64,000 nt of DNA. Source: Asterias rubens. Its lineage: Eukaryota. How positions within the stretch are numbered: position 1 is the first letter of the stretch; the number at the start of each line of letters is the position of its first letter. Where the stretch lies: NCBI RefSeq assembly GCF_902459465.1, contig NC_047068.1, forward strand, positions 8,990,001-9,054,000. The letters are read 5' to 3'. The position numbers and the translations under genes are program-made. A model generated the notes under the pieces. That model saw nothing but the letters and a program-made list of their open reading frames with translations, was not told where the DNA came from and did not search any database. Shown here piece by piece: positions 7,378 to 44,082 of the stretch.

Positions 7378-7736
7378 TTATAGTTCAAAGTAGACACAAC
7401 CCTCAATATCCTTGCAGGCTGACCTCCACACAACCAAACTCCTTCTTGAACAACATCTGTGCAGCCGATCCACATACCAACGCTCTCTTTCACTGCCCAT
7501 TCGTAGATGAAGTGGTTTTCTTCTCTTGAATCAGGCACTACGAGGTTGCTCCCTGGTCGCTTGCATATCGCATCGGCTTGCATCCAGTTCATCTTATCAG
7601 GGAGTAAGATGTAGCAAGACTCACGCCATTTTACCCAGCCAGTTGGACACGAGGAGAGGACGATACCAATGCGTTGCATTGTCGTCAATATTAAGAGATG
7701 AAACAGAATGGTATTCATGCTTTGAAGAAACAACAT
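7378..7736 (-). pseudogene. L1: CTLD-PAN lectin copy with an internal deletion of about 0.4 kb
   Basis: Signal peptide plus CTLD N-half (CPTGWVKWRESCY...WIGCTDVVQEGVWLCGGQPA) joined directly and out of frame to the terminal DIEGCVYFEL* sequence. Confidence 0.9.
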
Positions 7737-7806
7737 TATCTTGCTGCTCATCAACTCGGGTCTTGTCACTTATAAACACGGTCTGCCTACTGAATTTAAA
7801 GTGACA

Positions 7807-7960
7807 TACGACACCACACCATAGGCCTTTCGTCGCAACATGGTCAAAATAGACGAGCTCGGTTGTTTACATACGACACCACACCATAGGCCTTTTGTCA
7901 CAACATGGTCAAAATAGACGAGCTCGGTTGTTTACATACTACACCACACAATAGACCCTT
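7807..7960. repeat. 65-bp tandem repeat (about 2.4 copies) upstream of L1
   Basis: TACGACACCACACCATAGG... recurs at 7807 and 7872, and degenerately at 7937. Confidence 0.85.
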
Positions 7961-9224
7961 CGTAGACAAGCTGAGTTGTTGCTATCCTAAACTGACGAGT
8001 TACTTGGAGCTTATGGCACGTATAACTTATAAAAACACTTTATTACCAAACCGTAATGACAAAGGCCCGTTATCCGTTCGACAAGCTCAGTTATTGGTTC
8101 TTTATTAAATTTCTAGCATACACTTATTTATTGGAGATACCCTTGGGACTGTTGTTAGCATAAAGACCTTCACATTGTTCGCAAAATTAGCTATACGGGC
8201 AACCGGAAAACCTCTTGTACCTGACATTTTCAAGGATCTGTATCAAAGATAGCATGAACACAACAGGGGATATTAACTATGGATCCACGGCCCATCTCAT
8301 AATAGCCACCAACAAAGGATCGTGCGAGCTTGGCTTCGCACATCACAATACGCCTACTTCGGACTCAATATTGCCACGATGACGTCAGACTGTTCTTAAT
8401 GGACACGAAGCAACCATGTTGGGGAATTAATTAACCGATTTTGTGAATTTTTTTAGGGTTTTATTTGAGCCACGGGAATGATTTGTTGAAATCAGTGAGT
8501 AAAGTTGCGCAGCTAGCGACAGAATCGAGACCTCTAAAAGTCAGAGTAATGAGGCTTATATTTTATGCAAATGAATATAACACTAAGAATACGTTCACTG
8601 TGTAGTCTAGGATCGGTTCCCGTCATGGGGGGGGGGGGGGGGGCGTTCAGCAGGAACTAATGAAAGCGGAAAAGCATTCATCAAATTCTATCAAAATGTA
8701 TAAATCAATGGAACGATTTTTTATTTCTAAACACATAATTACAATAACACAGCACTTTCAAATTATATTGTTTATGGAATAACAACACGGAGATTAGAGT
8801 TAAAAACACGTTTGGCTAGTACACAAAATATTGACTGCTTAGAGTGCTATGGTTAAAACTACGACTCCCGAGGTGATCCCCGGAGAGTTCTATTTTAGAA
8901 TAGAACGGTCCGGGGATCACCGAACTTGAAACTCAAGAAAACATGTAATTTTTAGAAAACGGAGTCCAAAAATCTTTGAGGGCGCACTTGGTATCCTTGT
9001 ACGAGAGCACGAGAGTTACGGCAATTTGCGATTCAGAAGCCATTTTATTCCCCAAGAAACGCACGGACGAACACGGAGTAGTCGGCCCATTAGGTTGGGA
9101 GACAACATGGCGTCCAGCAATCACGTGACAAAAAACTGCATTTTTTTGTTTCACCTTCGTGTCGCAACTCCCTCAGTACACAGCTCCGCCCTGCAATAGC
9201 AACACATTATTTGCCGATCATTTG

Positions 9225-40237: not shown

Positions 40238-41421
40238 AGGAGTCCGTTCTCGATTGAATTCGAGCTTCTTGTGAAAACACTTTGACAGTTATTTCCTGAT
40301 TTATCAGCAAGTAGTTACGTGTGCAGCTGAAACTTTCACTTGTGACTCTATCATCTATTTTCGTATTGTAACTTAAATTACAAATTGCGTGGACAACAAA
40401 ACCACTGTATTGTTGTCGTAGCTTTAAAGGCACTGGACACTATTGGTATTTACTCAAAATAATTTTTAACATAAAAACTTTCCTGGTATCAACAAGCATT
40501 GAGCTGTGTATAGTTTAAAACATTGTGAGAAACGGCTCCCTTTGAAGTAATTTTCTGCGAATTTGATATCAAGACATCAGAGTTAGATTTTGAGGTCCCG
40601 AAATATCAAGCATCTGAAAGTACACAACTTTGTGTGAGAAGGGTGTTTTATGTTCCAGTATTGTCTCGCAACTTCGACGACCAAGTAAGTTTAAATTTGC
40701 ACAGTTTTTTTGTTATGCATGTTGAGATACACCAAGTGATAAGACTGGTCTTTGACAATTACCAATAGTGTCCAGTGCCTTTAAGTAGAGAGTACATTAA
40801 TGTTAACCAGTAATAGCTGGTCAATACGCTTTCAGTTGCTAAAATAATGTTCATGACTTGTTTTACTCATTAAAAAACACACCAAAAACCCAAAAAACTG
40901 TACGGTTACTCAACAAGTATTAAAGGGATGTTATTGGCCAAATCACCAGGGTACTAATGTAAAGCACACTGATACGATGATTGTGAAATGTTCTGTATAA
41001 GAATTTGTTATTATTACTGTTGTTATTGTTCTCAAGTTAAGGTATGAAACGACCTGTGCTGATAGTCTGACGTCACACTGCCAATCATCATGGCAATATT
41101 GAGGCCGAATTTATAAGTCACTGTCTTGATTTAGGCTTCCCAGTAGGTCCTTTTACTGCTTGACAATGGACCAATAATCCTTATTGTTCTGCTATTATCT
41201 TTGAATGCCTCTTCAAAATGTCAAATATAAGAGGTTTGCGTTTGTCGCCATTAGGTAATTTACGAGTCAATAATAGTATTCTACCCATTTTATAAATAAG
41301 ACACCGAGATAGACGAACGTGACTACAGGCCAGTTTTTAGTGTGGTAGCATATTGTATTTTGATGTGAAGTCTCTTGTCTGTGGTGAAAAAACTGCTTAT
41401 TGAAGTGACGAGTGCAGCAAG

Positions 41422-42162
41422 ATGATGTTATTTCTTAAAAGCATGAATACCATTCTGTTTCATCTCTTGATATTGATGACAATTCAAAGCATTGCTATCG
41501 TCCTCTCCTCTTGTCCAACTGGCTGGGTAAAATGGCGTCAGTCTTGCTACATCTTACTCCCTGAGAAGATGAACTGGATGCAAGCCGAGGCGGCATGCAA
41601 GCGACCAGGGAGCAACCTCATAGTGCCTGATTCAAGAGAAGAAAGCCACTTCATCTACGAGTGGGCAGTGAATGGGAAGGGAGGTCTATGGATCGGCTGC
41701 ACAGATGCTGCTCAAGAAGGAGTTTGGCTGTGTGGGGGTCAGCCTGCAAGATTCACCAACTGGAAAGACGACAGCCCAAGAAACGACACGAACTTGAACT
41801 GTCCACGAATGACAGTTCAAGCATCTGGAGTTTGGTCTGACAACATAAGTTGCAAGAATGGCGCCCCTAAATTTGCTGCATGTGAGATGCCAGCCCCTAC
41901 CGTGCCAATCTACCACACCCTGCTAGGTCCCGATGGGCGTGTCTCTCAATACTGCCCCCTCAATCACGTCATCGACAACCTGGCCGTAGAGGGTGTGATT
42001 GCTTGTGGCTGGGCGTGTACATCAGATCCTCGTTGCCGCTCCTTTAATGTTTGGCAGAGCAGCGAGAAAGAGAAGAAATGTCACCTCAACAACGTCACAT
42101 TTCTTGAGGACGATCACACCGACTTGAAGAACATTGAGTGTTGTGTCTACTTTGAACCTTAA
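41422..42162 (+). CDS. L12: CTLD-PAN lectin, cassette C; L13/L11 chimera
   Basis: Intact 246-aa ORF. The tandem period is exactly 1925 bp (39497, 41422, 43347). Confidence 0.88.
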   Translation: MMLFLKSMNTILFHLLILMTIQSIAIVLSSCPTGWVKWRQSCYILLPEKMNWMQAEAACKRPGSNLIVPDSREESHFIYEWAVNGKGGLWIGCTDAAQEGVWLCGGQPARFTNWKDDSPRNDTNLNCPRMTVQASGVWSDNISCKNGAPKFAACEMPAPTVPIYHTLLGPDGRVSQYCPLNHVIDNLAVEGVIACGWACTSDPRCRSFNVWQSSEKEKKCHLNNVTFLEDDHTDLKNIECCVYFEP

Positions 42163-43346
42163 AGGAGTCCGTTCTCGATTGAATTCGAGCTTCTTGTGAA
42201 AACACTTTGACAGTTATTTCCTGATTTATCAGCAAGTAGTTACGTGTGCAGCTGAAACTTTCACTTGTGACTCTATCATCTATTTTCGTATTGTAACTTA
42301 AATTACAAATTGCGTGGACAACAAAACCACTGTATTGTTGTCGTAGCTTTAAAGGCACTGGACACTATTGGTATTTACTCAAAATAATTTTTAACATAAA
42401 AACTTTCCTGGTATCAACAAGCATTGAGCTGTGTATAGTTTAAAACATTGTGAGAAACGGCTCCCTTTGAAGTAATTTTCTGCGAATTTGATATCAAGAC
42501 ATCAGAGTTAGATTTTGAGGTCCCGAAATATCAAGCATCTGAAAGTACACAACTTTGTGTGAGAAGGGTGTTTTATGTTCCAGTATTGTCTCGCAACTTC
42601 GACGACCAAGTAAGTTTAAATTTGCACAGTTTTTTTGTTATGCATGTTGAGATACACCAAGTGATAAGACTGGTCTTTGACAATTACCAATAGTGTCCAG
42701 AGCCTTTAAGTAGAGAGTACATTAATGTTAACCAGTAATAGCTGGTCAATACGCTTTCAGTTGCTAAAATAATGTTCATGACTTGTTTTACTCATTAAAA
42801 AACACACCAAAAACCCAAAAAACTGTACGGTTACTCAACAAGTATTAAAGGGATGTTATTGGCCCAATCACCAGGGTACTAATGTAAAGCACATTGATAC
42901 GATGATTGTGAAATGTTCTGTATAAGAATTTGTTATTATTACTGTTATTATTGTTCTCAAGTTAAGGTATGAAACGACCTGTGCTGATAGTCTGACGTCA
43001 CACTGCCAATCATCATGGCAATATTGAGGCCGAATTTATAAGTCACTGTCTTGATTTAGGCTTCCCAGTAGGTCCTTTTACTGCTTGACAATGGACCAAT
43101 AATCCTTATTGTTCTGCTATTATCTTTGAATGCCTCTTCAAAATGTCAAATATAAGAGGTTTGCGTTTGTCGCCATTAGGTAATTTACGAGTCAATAATA
43201 GTATTCTACCCATTTTATAAATAAGACACCGAGATAGACGAACGTGACTACAGGCCAGTTTTTAGTGTGGTAGCATATTGTATTTTGATGTGAAGTCTCT
43301 TGTCTGTGGTGAAAAAACTGCTTATTGAAGTGACGAGTGCAGCAAG

Positions 43347-44082
43347 ATGATGTTATTTCTTAAAAGCATGAATACCATTCTGTTTCATCTCTTGATATTG
43401 ATGACAATTCAAAGCATTGCTATCGTCCTCTCCTCTTGTCCAACTGGCTGGGTAAAATGGCGTCAGTCTTGCTACATCTTACTCCCTGAGAAGATGAACT
43501 GGATGCAAGCCGAGGCGGCATGCAAGCGACCAGGGAGCAACCTCATAGTGCCTGATTCAAGAGAAGAAAACGACTTCATCTACGAATGGGCAGTGAAAGG
43601 GAATGACGGTATGTGGATCGGCTGCACAGATGCTGCTCAAGAAGGAGTTTGGCTGTGTGGTGGTCAGCCTGCAAGATTCACAAATTGGAAAGACGACAGC
43701 CCAAGAAACGACATGGATCTGAACTGTGCCCGAATGACGATTTATTCTGGTGGATGGTCTGACAACTTAAGTTGCAAGAGTGACGCCCCTAAATTTGCTG
43801 CATGTGAGATGCCAGCCCCTACCGTGCCAATCTACCACACCCTGCTAGGTCTCGATGGGCGTGTCTCTCAATACTGCCCCCTCAATCACGTCATCGACAA
43901 CCTTGCCGTAGAGGGTGTGATTGCTTGTGGCTGGGCGTGTACATCAGATCCTCGTTGCCGCTCCTTTAATGTTTGGCCGAGCAGCGAGAAAGAGAAGAAA
44001 TGTCAACTCAATAACGTCACTTGAGGAGGACAATAACACCGACTCTAAGGATACTGAGGGTTGTGTCTACTTTGAACTGTAA
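43347..44082 (+). pseudogene. L13: CTLD-PAN lectin with a late frameshift (225-aa truncated product, possibly still functional)
   Basis: A small deletion after NNVT (5 nt relative to L11) gives TGA at 44022-44024. The original tail EEDNNTDSKDTEGCVYFEL* survives out of frame to 44082. Confidence 0.8.

Follow-up and report, generated by a model that had tools for sequence, protein, structure and literature searches.

Arrays of C-type lectin-like domains (CTLDs) are familiar from the mammalian Ly49/KLRA and NKG2 clusters and from the snaclecs, in which the fold is conserved, the ligand-binding loops vary and the genes change by duplication, conversion, unequal crossover and pseudogenisation. The natural killer (NK) lectin-like receptors are type II membrane proteins and the snaclecs are disulfide-linked venom heterodimers, and neither group carries a PAN domain. 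Among echinoderms, Sp185/333 (SpTransformer) is a family of clustered small genes in a repeat-rich region, with mosaics that are built from presence/absence elements and attributed to recombination. Sea stars have no adaptive immunity and, to our knowledge, their recognition molecules are poorly known. Here we analyse a stretch of 64 kb from the forcipulate (asteriid) sea star Asterias rubens (NC_047068.1, positions 8,990,001 to 9,054,000; hereafter the window, with coordinates counted from its first letter), which contains a 37-kb tandem array of genes for small proteins that combine a CTLD with a PAN/Apple domain and in which one segment of the CTLD, here called the cassette, varies on an otherwise nearly fixed scaffold.

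The array is like the NK-receptor clusters and the snaclecs in its working and its evolution, with, as far as is generally known, no close sequence relationship to them; by contrast, its products are predicted to be secreted CTLD-PAN monomers. An earlier note on this DNA had compared the genes with SpTransformer, and the comparison holds in so far as both are clustered mosaic families of echinoderms, but the fold and the sequence are unrelated (Pfam reports Lectin_C and PAN only in the array), homologous segments are replaced with small indels instead of being present or absent, and the cassettes are conserved between species. The reading that we prefer, with a probability of about 0.8, is that of an uncharacterised and predictedly secreted CTLD-PAN family in which ancient, stable loop lineages are carried along by birth-and-death evolution, ectopic conversion and unequal crossing-over. 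This calls for no new diversification mechanism, tandem families under birth-and-death evolution and gene conversion being expected to show such a pattern.

Layout of the array and the encoded protein

A tblastn search of the window with one copy as query located 13 lectin loci between 7.4 and 44.1 kb, arranged in two head-to-head blocks with L1-L8 on the minus strand and L9-L13 on the plus strand. Uninterrupted single-exon open reading frames (ORFs) are retained by eight of the 13 loci (L3-L7, L9, L11 and L12), the intronless status being established for the coding sequence only, while L1, L2, L8, L10 and L13 are defective; these numbers agree with the thirteen copies, eight of them intact, of the earlier note. 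The extents listed with the tblastn search were 7407-7763 for L1, 15582-16370 for L4, 18854-19675 for L5, 22054-22869 for L6 and 26791-27621 for L7. The features of the array are as follows, where A, B and C are cassette types and AmA1-AmA7 are the copies of the corresponding array in Asterias amurensis.

7365-7769, minus: L1, pseudogene; leader and N-terminal CTLD fused out of frame to the last ~11 PAN codons
11331-11549, minus: L2, 5' fragment from the leader to AEAACK, with no homology beyond
13191-13940, minus: L3, intact ORF, type A cassette; counterpart AmA7
15582-16316, minus: L4, intact ORF, hybrid cassette with the first half of type A and the second half B-like; counterpart AmA6
18854-19588, minus: L5, intact ORF, type C cassette; counterpart AmA3
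22054-22782, minus: L6, intact ORF, type B cassette; 3' end groups with AmA4
26791-27534, minus: L7, intact ORF; apparent duplicate of the L6 unit bearing the type A cassette of L3
32734-33502, minus: L8, pseudogene, cassette of a type A subtype; counterpart AmA5
33503-35780, no strand: head-to-head junction between the minus and plus blocks
35781-36497, plus: L9, intact ORF, type B cassette, 15-nt leader deletion; clear orthologue AmA2
37427-37525, plus: L10, 3' fragment with the last ~33 PAN codons and downstream flank
39497-40237, plus: L11, intact ORF, type C cassette; opens a series of three units at an exact spacing of 1,925 bp
41422-42162, plus: L12, intact ORF; apparent unequal-crossover chimera, 5' part from L13 and 3' part from L11
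43347-44082, plus: L13, pseudogene; frameshift ~25 codons before the end

The defects differ from copy to copy. L1 has lost its cassette and most of its PAN domain in an internal deletion that joins GQPA to DIEGCVYFEL out of frame; the two endpoints of this deletion have the tetranucleotide CAAG in common, consistent with a microhomology-mediated event. In L8, 16 bp of the leader are duplicated and the cassette is interrupted by an in-frame stop, besides other lesions. The cassette of L13 is a mosaic with a core of the AmA1 type and edges of the L11 type, and its 3' end is orthologous to that of AmA1. Outside the genes, the flanks of L5 match those of L6 and L7 at ~96-99% identity.

Throughout the array the leader, the CPxGWVKWRQSCY block, the WIGCTDAAQEGVWLCGGQPA block and the core of the PAN domain are nearly invariant, and the ~47 residues between GQPA and CEMP are variable. 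The three main cassette types proposed from the sequence were recovered with the same members (A in L3, L7 and L8; B in L6 and L9; C in L5, L11 and L12). The types are real, but they subdivide into at least seven lineages once the A/B hybrid of L4, the sub-cassette mosaic of L13 and the A subtype of L8 are taken into account. In a similar way, the description of the PAN domain as almost invariant applies to its core but not to its last ~30 residues, which fall into two or three types and have the highest synonymous diversity anywhere in the gene.

The encoded protein has ~245 amino acids and consists of a signal peptide, a CTLD and a PAN/Apple domain. Pfam detected Lectin_C (PF00059) in all copies tested (E = 1e-9 to 1e-13), with 46.0 bits for L7, 49.4 for L9 and 37.9 for L11 against a cut-off of 22.6. 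PAN_1 (PF00024) reached 23.0 bits in L9 against a cut-off of 21.4, was not reported for L7 or L11, and is precomputed on several homologues. In an alignment of 42 sequences the PAN cysteines C196, C200, C206 and C242 are invariant and C179 and C221 are conserved in at least 90%, and by profile and six-cysteine pattern together the C-terminal part is assigned to the PAN/Apple domains. The lectin-Apple domain content that had been proposed for the family was therefore recovered by Pfam, with Lectin_C in the copies tested and PAN_1 above threshold in L9.

Next, the structure was predicted with AlphaFold2 (AF2). A first run with 31 close relatives aligned gave a mean predicted local distance difference test (pLDDT) value of 38.7 and was discarded; with the 42-sequence alignment the CTLD part reached 86-96. 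Foldseek matched the modelled CTLD to the carbohydrate-recognition domains of SRCL, CEL-I, mincle and CD23 with template modelling (TM) scores of 0.8-0.88 at 22-33% identity, so that the model corresponds to a long-form CTLD fold. These nearest solved folds, among them CEL-I of Cucumaria echinata, belong to canonical Ca2+-dependent binders with EPN/QPD and WND motifs, unlike the array proteins. In phmmer comparisons with solved CTLDs, the residues of the array proteins that correspond to EPN/QPD are QPH (type A), NPR or SPR (type C) and FTL or FPL (type B), those that correspond to WND are WSD or WAD, and NPH is a further triplet of the window proteins at the EPN position. The canonical EPN/QPD triplet with WND (Ca2+ site 2) was found in no array copy.

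This alignment, with the triplet on the EPN/QPD position and WSD on WND, supports the earlier note in placing the variable block at the ligand-binding face of the CTLD; the cassette covers the long loop and β3-β4, the predicted ligand-binding site. Distant full-length CTLD-PAN relatives keep GEPN, NEPN, NQPD or GQPN at the triplet position, and the sea-star clade appears from its sequences to have abandoned the canonical Ca2+/sugar triad. Ligand binding is probably non-canonical (not of the EPN/QPD-WND, Ca2+-site-2 kind) and paralogue-specific. Judged from the leader, the proteins would be secreted, and they may act as humoral recognition proteins.

Mosaic genes and legible recombination events

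Segments of the same gene have different closest relatives. L6 and L7 are 99.4% identical in the 5' segment, 68% in the cassette and 98.9% in the 3' segment, and L3 and L7 are 100% identical in the cassette and 88-93% elsewhere. The pairwise homoplasy index (PHI) test gave z = -20 for the array of the window, a value as low being reached in 0 of 2000 permutations; the signal remained without the cassette columns (z = -11.6) and without L7 and L12 (z = -19.8), and was also present in the A. amurensis array alone (z = -5.6). For the 5' and 3' segments, approximately unbiased (AU) tests rejected clades by cassette type (p = 0.001-0.04), the exception being type B in the 3' segment, and for the cassette they rejected the L5/L6/L7 clade (p = 2e-5). 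Significant tracts in a GENECONV-style permutation analysis lie in the cassette (L3-L7), in the 5' scaffold (L6-L7, L12-L13 and L3-L5) and in the PAN domain (L5/L6/L7-L8).

These results indicate that the genes are mosaics produced by germline recombination between paralogues, in agreement with the earlier note, which had named congruent segment trees as one observation that would speak against it; by the AU tests the trees are incongruent. They also correct the idea that exchange is centred on the cassette: since significant tracts were also found in the 5' scaffold and the PAN domain, and since the PHI signal persists without the cassette columns, exchange is gene-wide.

Synonymous divergence (dS) points to a long separate history of the cassettes, with values of 0.4-0.7 between cassette types versus 0.06-0.28 in the scaffold, which would make the types older than the coalescence of the scaffold; the ratio of nonsynonymous to synonymous divergence (omega) of the cassette between types is ~0.7-1.2. 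The upstream flanks of different paralogue groups are unalignable up to ~10-20 bp before the ATG, and because these neutral flanks have diverged so far, the low dS of the scaffold would need homogenisation by conversion in addition to protein constraint.

Some events can be read directly. Identity between the L6 and L7 units is 99-100% along ~0.8 kb of upstream and at least 1.7 kb of downstream sequence and falls to 75% in a ~200-bp island exactly at the cassette; outside the tract zone (columns 390-594) the alignment has 0 differences in 564 columns, and L7 has the appearance of a very recent duplicate of the L6 unit. Positions 27029-27273 of L7 are a 245-bp perfect copy of L3 13429-13673, with a 5' junction inside the WIGCTDAAQEG block and a 3' junction just past YHTLI, and the chance of such an identical run, given 11.6% divergence between L3 and L7 outside the tract, is P ~7e-14. 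As AmA7, the counterpart of L3, already has this cassette, the direction of the transfer would have been from L3 to L7.

The starts of L11, L12 and L13 lie exactly 1,925 bp apart. The 560 bp upstream of L12 and the first ~240 bp of its coding sequence are 98-100% identical to L13; from there to the end of the coding sequence, and for at least 1.1 kb beyond it, the match is to L11 at 99-100% identity, with one clean switch from L13-like to L11-like across the 1,925-bp unit and a junction at 41608-41645. Such a structure is what one unequal crossover between misaligned L13 and L11 is expected to produce. A further, older replacement concerns L6, whose cassette is 96.8% identical to that of L9/AmA2 and 87.1% to that of AmA4; since the cassette is nearer to L9/AmA2 while the 3' end groups with AmA4, it was probably replaced from the L9 lineage after speciation. 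The array thus offers legible non-allelic recombination, with a one-junction crossover chimera and a two-junction perfect conversion, that could be used to estimate conversion rates in echinoderms.

An independent protein encoded on a 1.7-kb contig of the ENA assembly ERZ23498375 (P0014) is 95.6% identical to L6 and has the cassette and C-terminus of the L6 type together with the CLLHHV signature of L9 in its PAN domain; from this combination it would be another mosaic, from a relative or from another individual.

The conserved blocks around the cassette had been likened to recombination anchors. The WIGCTDAAQEG.WLCGGQP block is invariant as protein, including in Patiria and Acanthaster, but at the DNA level 8 of its 19 codons differ synonymously in Patiria, and within Asteriidae its synonymous diversity is not reduced (0.085 versus 0.105 in the rest of the scaffold, p = 0.30). 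An anchor in the sense of a DNA-level signal was rejected on these grounds: the flanking blocks are best described as conserved CTLD core that would give passive homology for recombination.

Age of the cassettes and weighing of the explanations

To place these events in time we compared the array with the syntenic interval of A. amurensis (CP134962.1, 4.236-4.262 Mb), which contains seven copies (AmA1-AmA7) in the same head-to-head layout, with a junction of 2.3 kb between AmA2 and AmA3, and a sulfotransferase neighbour as in the window. In the window this neighbour is an ORF at 52132-52740 (plus strand), probably an exon, with a Sulfotransfer_1 match of 23.4 bits; the presence of a sulfotransferase gene next to the A. 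amurensis array as well, at its AmA1 end, supports synteny. Near-full copies number 10 in the window and 7 in the A. amurensis interval. By cassette and diagnostic scaffold features the counterparts are L9 and AmA2, L5 and AmA3, L4 and AmA6, L3 and AmA7, and L8 and AmA5, and by the 3' end L13 corresponds to AmA1 and L6 approximately to AmA4, while L7, L11 and L12 are specific to the lineage of the window.

The cassettes pair across species in the tree and are 95-98% identical in clean orthologue pairs, equal to or above the identity of the scaffold. L9 and AmA2 have the 15-nt leader deletion in common and their cassettes differ by 1 synonymous and 1 nonsynonymous change. AmA6 bears the same A/B hybrid cassette as L4, which, being carried in both species, would be older than speciation. 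As nearly every cassette has an A. amurensis counterpart, the types are dated by these comparisons to before the split of A. rubens and A. amurensis, and appear as old, largely stable lineages; the swappable, rapidly reshuffled cassettes of the earlier note do not survive this comparison. L8 and AmA5 (19346-20113 of the merged A. amurensis sequence) are both interrupted, with different lesions and stops, which suggests that the same paralogue decayed independently in the two species.

The array therefore shows what is seen in tandem families, with incongruent segment trees and exchange tracts on the one hand and orthologous lineages alongside lineage-specific gains and losses on the other. In the explanation that we prefer, each cassette type would represent an old lineage of paralogues that presumably has a stable ligand specificity of its own, and the similarity of the scaffold would be kept by purifying selection on the fold and further homogenised by recurrent germline non-allelic homologous recombination between neighbours, in the form of both conversion and unequal crossing-over. 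Occasional transplants of whole or partial cassettes would be a by-product of this process (L3 to L7, probably L9 to L6, and the sub-cassette patches in L13 and L4/AmA6), and the same recombination would make and destroy copies, as in the L12 chimera, the L6/L7 duplication, the L1 deletion and the L2 and L10 fragments.

A dedicated and fast combinatorial repertoire, in which cassettes are often swapped between scaffolds and individuals differ as they do for KIR, Ly49 and Sp185/333, would fit the perfect whole-cassette transfer from L3 to L7 with the probable older one from L9 to L6, the independent mosaic P0014, the omega of ~1.1 of orthologue cassettes and the 10 near-full copies against 7 in the A. 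amurensis interval. We consider it unlikely, since nearly every cassette has a one-to-one partner in A. amurensis with high identity in the clean pairs, just about two whole-cassette transfers are visible since a split of ~0.1 neutral divergence, the exchange tracts extend over the whole gene and the supposed anchors have no DNA-level specialisation. Of the germline, conversion-diversified repertoire that the earlier note had envisaged, germline mosaicism by conversion stands, but the picture of a diversity generator was overstated, the cassettes being old and stable. The same note had allowed for somatic diversification, with cassettes moved between copies in immune cells as in chicken immunoglobulin genes or lamprey VLR genes. 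Nothing was found in its favour beyond a formal resemblance to such systems, which lies in the conserved blocks around a variable block and in the presence of pseudogene copies, whereas the near-full copies are complete genes each with its own leader, cassette, PAN domain and stop, the fragments L1, L2 and L10 have no cassette, and no array of donor cassettes feeds one acceptor. Moreover, the mosaics are fixed in the germline and many are common to A. amurensis, the adjacent reverse transcriptase belongs to a Penelope-like transposon, and the cassette differences have no consistent adenine-specific bias of the kind left by diversity-generating retroelements, all of which makes a somatic mechanism very improbable. 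Divergence in place, by positive selection or a mutational hotspot and with mosaicism reduced to rate heterogeneity, receives next to no weight from us: an omega of ~0.7-1.2 between cassette types and the strong protein constraint on the scaffold out to Patiria and Acanthaster would suit it, but not the 245-bp identity of L3 and L7 inside copies that are 11.6% diverged elsewhere, nor the complete lack of differences between L6 and L7 to either side of an island with 32% divergence, the rejection of a single tree by the AU and PHI tests, or the synonymous divergence that is raised in the cassette too.

The most recent mosaics might be artefacts of assembly, with L6 and L7 as haplotypes placed in tandem or L7 and L12 as chimeric consensus sequences. 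Outside the cassette the units of L6 and L7 agree at ~99-100%, a level within plausible sea-star heterozygosity, and the gap of Ns at 45350-45849 with its 898-bp perfect duplicate is a sign of local assembly trouble. But the interval from L5 to L8 is gap-free, clean junctions border the L7 tract and mark the switch in L12, with long stretches that match the respective parents perfectly, and in its order and spacing L12 agrees exactly with the prediction for an unequal crossover; should L6 and L7 be alleles, a transplanted cassette would still sit in one of the two. The older events (the L6 cassette compared with AmA4, L4/AmA6, L13 and the scaffold tracts) are independent of these junctions, and the PHI signal is also present in the independent A. 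amurensis assembly, for which reasons we regard an artefact as decidedly unlikely.

Several observations nevertheless weigh against the preferred explanation of old, stable lineages in a secreted CTLD-PAN family. The most striking recent events, L7 and L12, rest on one assembly, with the gap at 45350-45849 and the 898-bp perfect duplicate on both sides of it near the array. The PAN part of the AF2 model has low confidence (pLDDT 32-50), and the short contigs on which relatives are encoded in the databases come from genomes or metagenomes, none of them being a transcript (a fragmented genome assembly for P0009, a metagenome contig for P0004). L4 has lost two PAN cysteines and L5 one, and the first ATG, conserved in the family, is TTG in L3, where the next in-frame Met comes 7 codons on; because ORF-intact copies have lost these features, the functional repertoire may be smaller than eight. 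The remaining points concern selection on the cassette, for which six clean orthologue pairs pooled gave a nonsynonymous divergence (dN) of 0.045, a dS of 0.039 and an omega of ~1.1, compared with an omega of 0.41-0.53 and a dS of 0.11-0.12 in the scaffold. The dS of the cassette is unexpectedly low, with synonymous differences at 6/157 versus 80/754 in the scaffold (Fisher p = 0.006), and is unexplained. Selection is also heterogeneous between the pairs: the cassettes of L9/AmA2 and Am77a/Ar1 are nearly unchanged, while nonsynonymous and synonymous changes stand at 8:0 in L3/AmA7 and 10:1 in Am77b/Ar2.

Conversion between paralogues was considered as a cause of the higher dS in the scaffold and was dropped, as the neutral divergence of L8/AmA5, ~8-10%, is close to the scaffold dS. 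It is the low value of the cassette that is odd, because the divergence of this pseudogene pair resembles that of the scaffold.

A more speculative extension, which we hold to be rather unlikely, is that combinations of cassette and scaffold as well as copy number are polymorphic in populations through frequent ectopic conversion and give each individual its own recognition set. The L3 to L7 transfer, the near-identical L6 and L7 (possibly alleles) and P0014 may then be snapshots of this process. If true, the polymorphic array would be an invertebrate secreted-lectin analogue of KIR/Ly49 haplotype diversity, built on ancient trans-specific cassettes. Under the preferred explanation itself, a compact array of predicted secreted lectins that carries at least seven old loop lineages on a nearly fixed scaffold, with the canonical sugar/Ca2+ site apparently abandoned, is a good candidate set for paralogue-specific recognition, and its proteins are small, single-exon and easily expressed.

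Relatives and neighbouring elements

The best protein matches to an L12 query come from A. amurensis with 80-85% identity, the best pair being P0002/L5 with ~90%, and matches from Patiria miniata and Acanthaster planci are 52-56% identical over the full length. These other sea-star CTLD-PAN proteins are like those of the array in their full-length homology, the WIGCTDAAQEG.WLCGGQP block and a single coding exon, and unlike them in copy number and order. The earlier note was not aware of a description of the family, and our literature searches found no paper that studies this sea-star CTLD-PAN family, but its members in A. amurensis, A. rubens, P. miniata and A. planci are auto-annotated ('perlucin-like', 'CLEC4M-like' or 'CD209-like') and the architecture is common in molluscs. 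Mollusc proteins with Lectin_C and PAN_1 have the same two-domain architecture in ~230-240 amino acids with feature scores of 0.94-0.95, and their ESM Atlas clusters are named 'Lectin C-type/PAN domain-containing protein' or 'low affinity IgE Fc receptor-like'; they differ in their identity of ~32-41% and in that many keep EPN- or QPD-like triplets that are replaced in sea stars, the relationship resting on similar profiles and features and not on a tree. A profile search of 1.84 billion representatives returned mostly giant multi-CTLD proteins and about a dozen full-length relatives of ~245 amino acids.

One protein of Patiria miniata (P0015, L006:16023-16976) is an uninterrupted ORF of 317 amino acids in which cassette and linker are duplicated in tandem, so that the binding loop occurs twice; this duplication resembles what an unequal crossover within the gene would produce. 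In A. amurensis, family members outside the main array are dispersed at 7.7 and 8.5 Mb. The outlying members of A. amurensis (7.7/8.5 Mb) and A. rubens comprise a singleton between EF-hand and nucleoside transporter genes and a small cluster beside NUDIX and CSN1 genes, the latter conserved between A. amurensis and A. rubens.

The spaces between and beyond the lectin genes hold the following transposon-related features.

29796-31184, plus: ORF of a Penelope-like retroelement (reverse transcriptase and GIY-YIG domains) between L7 and L8, a transposon outside the lectin system
10097-10440: MITE-like copy
12125-12502: MITE-like copy
14528-14911: MITE-like copy
17668-18058: MITE-like copy
37763-38134: MITE-like copy
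38217-38605: MITE-like copy
40421-40785: MITE-like copy
42346-42710: MITE-like copy

A diversity-generating retroelement was tried as an explanation of the variable cassettes and rejected: the nearby reverse transcriptase has a GIY-YIG domain and is Penelope-like, and most cassette pairs mismatch at all four bases in both members and also by indels, with no consistent adenine bias. Between the L6 and L9 cassettes all four nucleotide mismatches are A in L6, a sample that is too small, and the bias is not seen in other pairs. Matches to tRNA lie on either side of the Penelope-like ORF, at 31854-31926 (minus) and 29360-29419 (plus); by Rfam score one of the two is a tRNA (54 bits) and one is weakly tRNA-like (32 bits).

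The element resembling a miniature inverted-repeat transposable element (MITE) is ~375-386 bp long, has 28-nt terminal inverted repeats beginning TTAAAGGCACTGGACAC and occurs in most array spacers and in both orientations; the two copies at 37.8-38.6 kb form an adjacent inverted pair. It could add homology for non-allelic recombination.

Next to the array, the segments 44452-45349 and 45850-46747, 898 bp each and 100% identical, flank the 500-N gap and are most likely an assembly or scaffolding artefact. A promoter and terminator scan of the window gave counts at chance level, with motifs that are bacterial consensus sequences and irrelevant to a eukaryote. At 57972-58337 (minus strand) there is an ORF with a chitin-binding peritrophin-A domain (CBM_14, E = 6e-10), a neighbour unrelated to the lectins.

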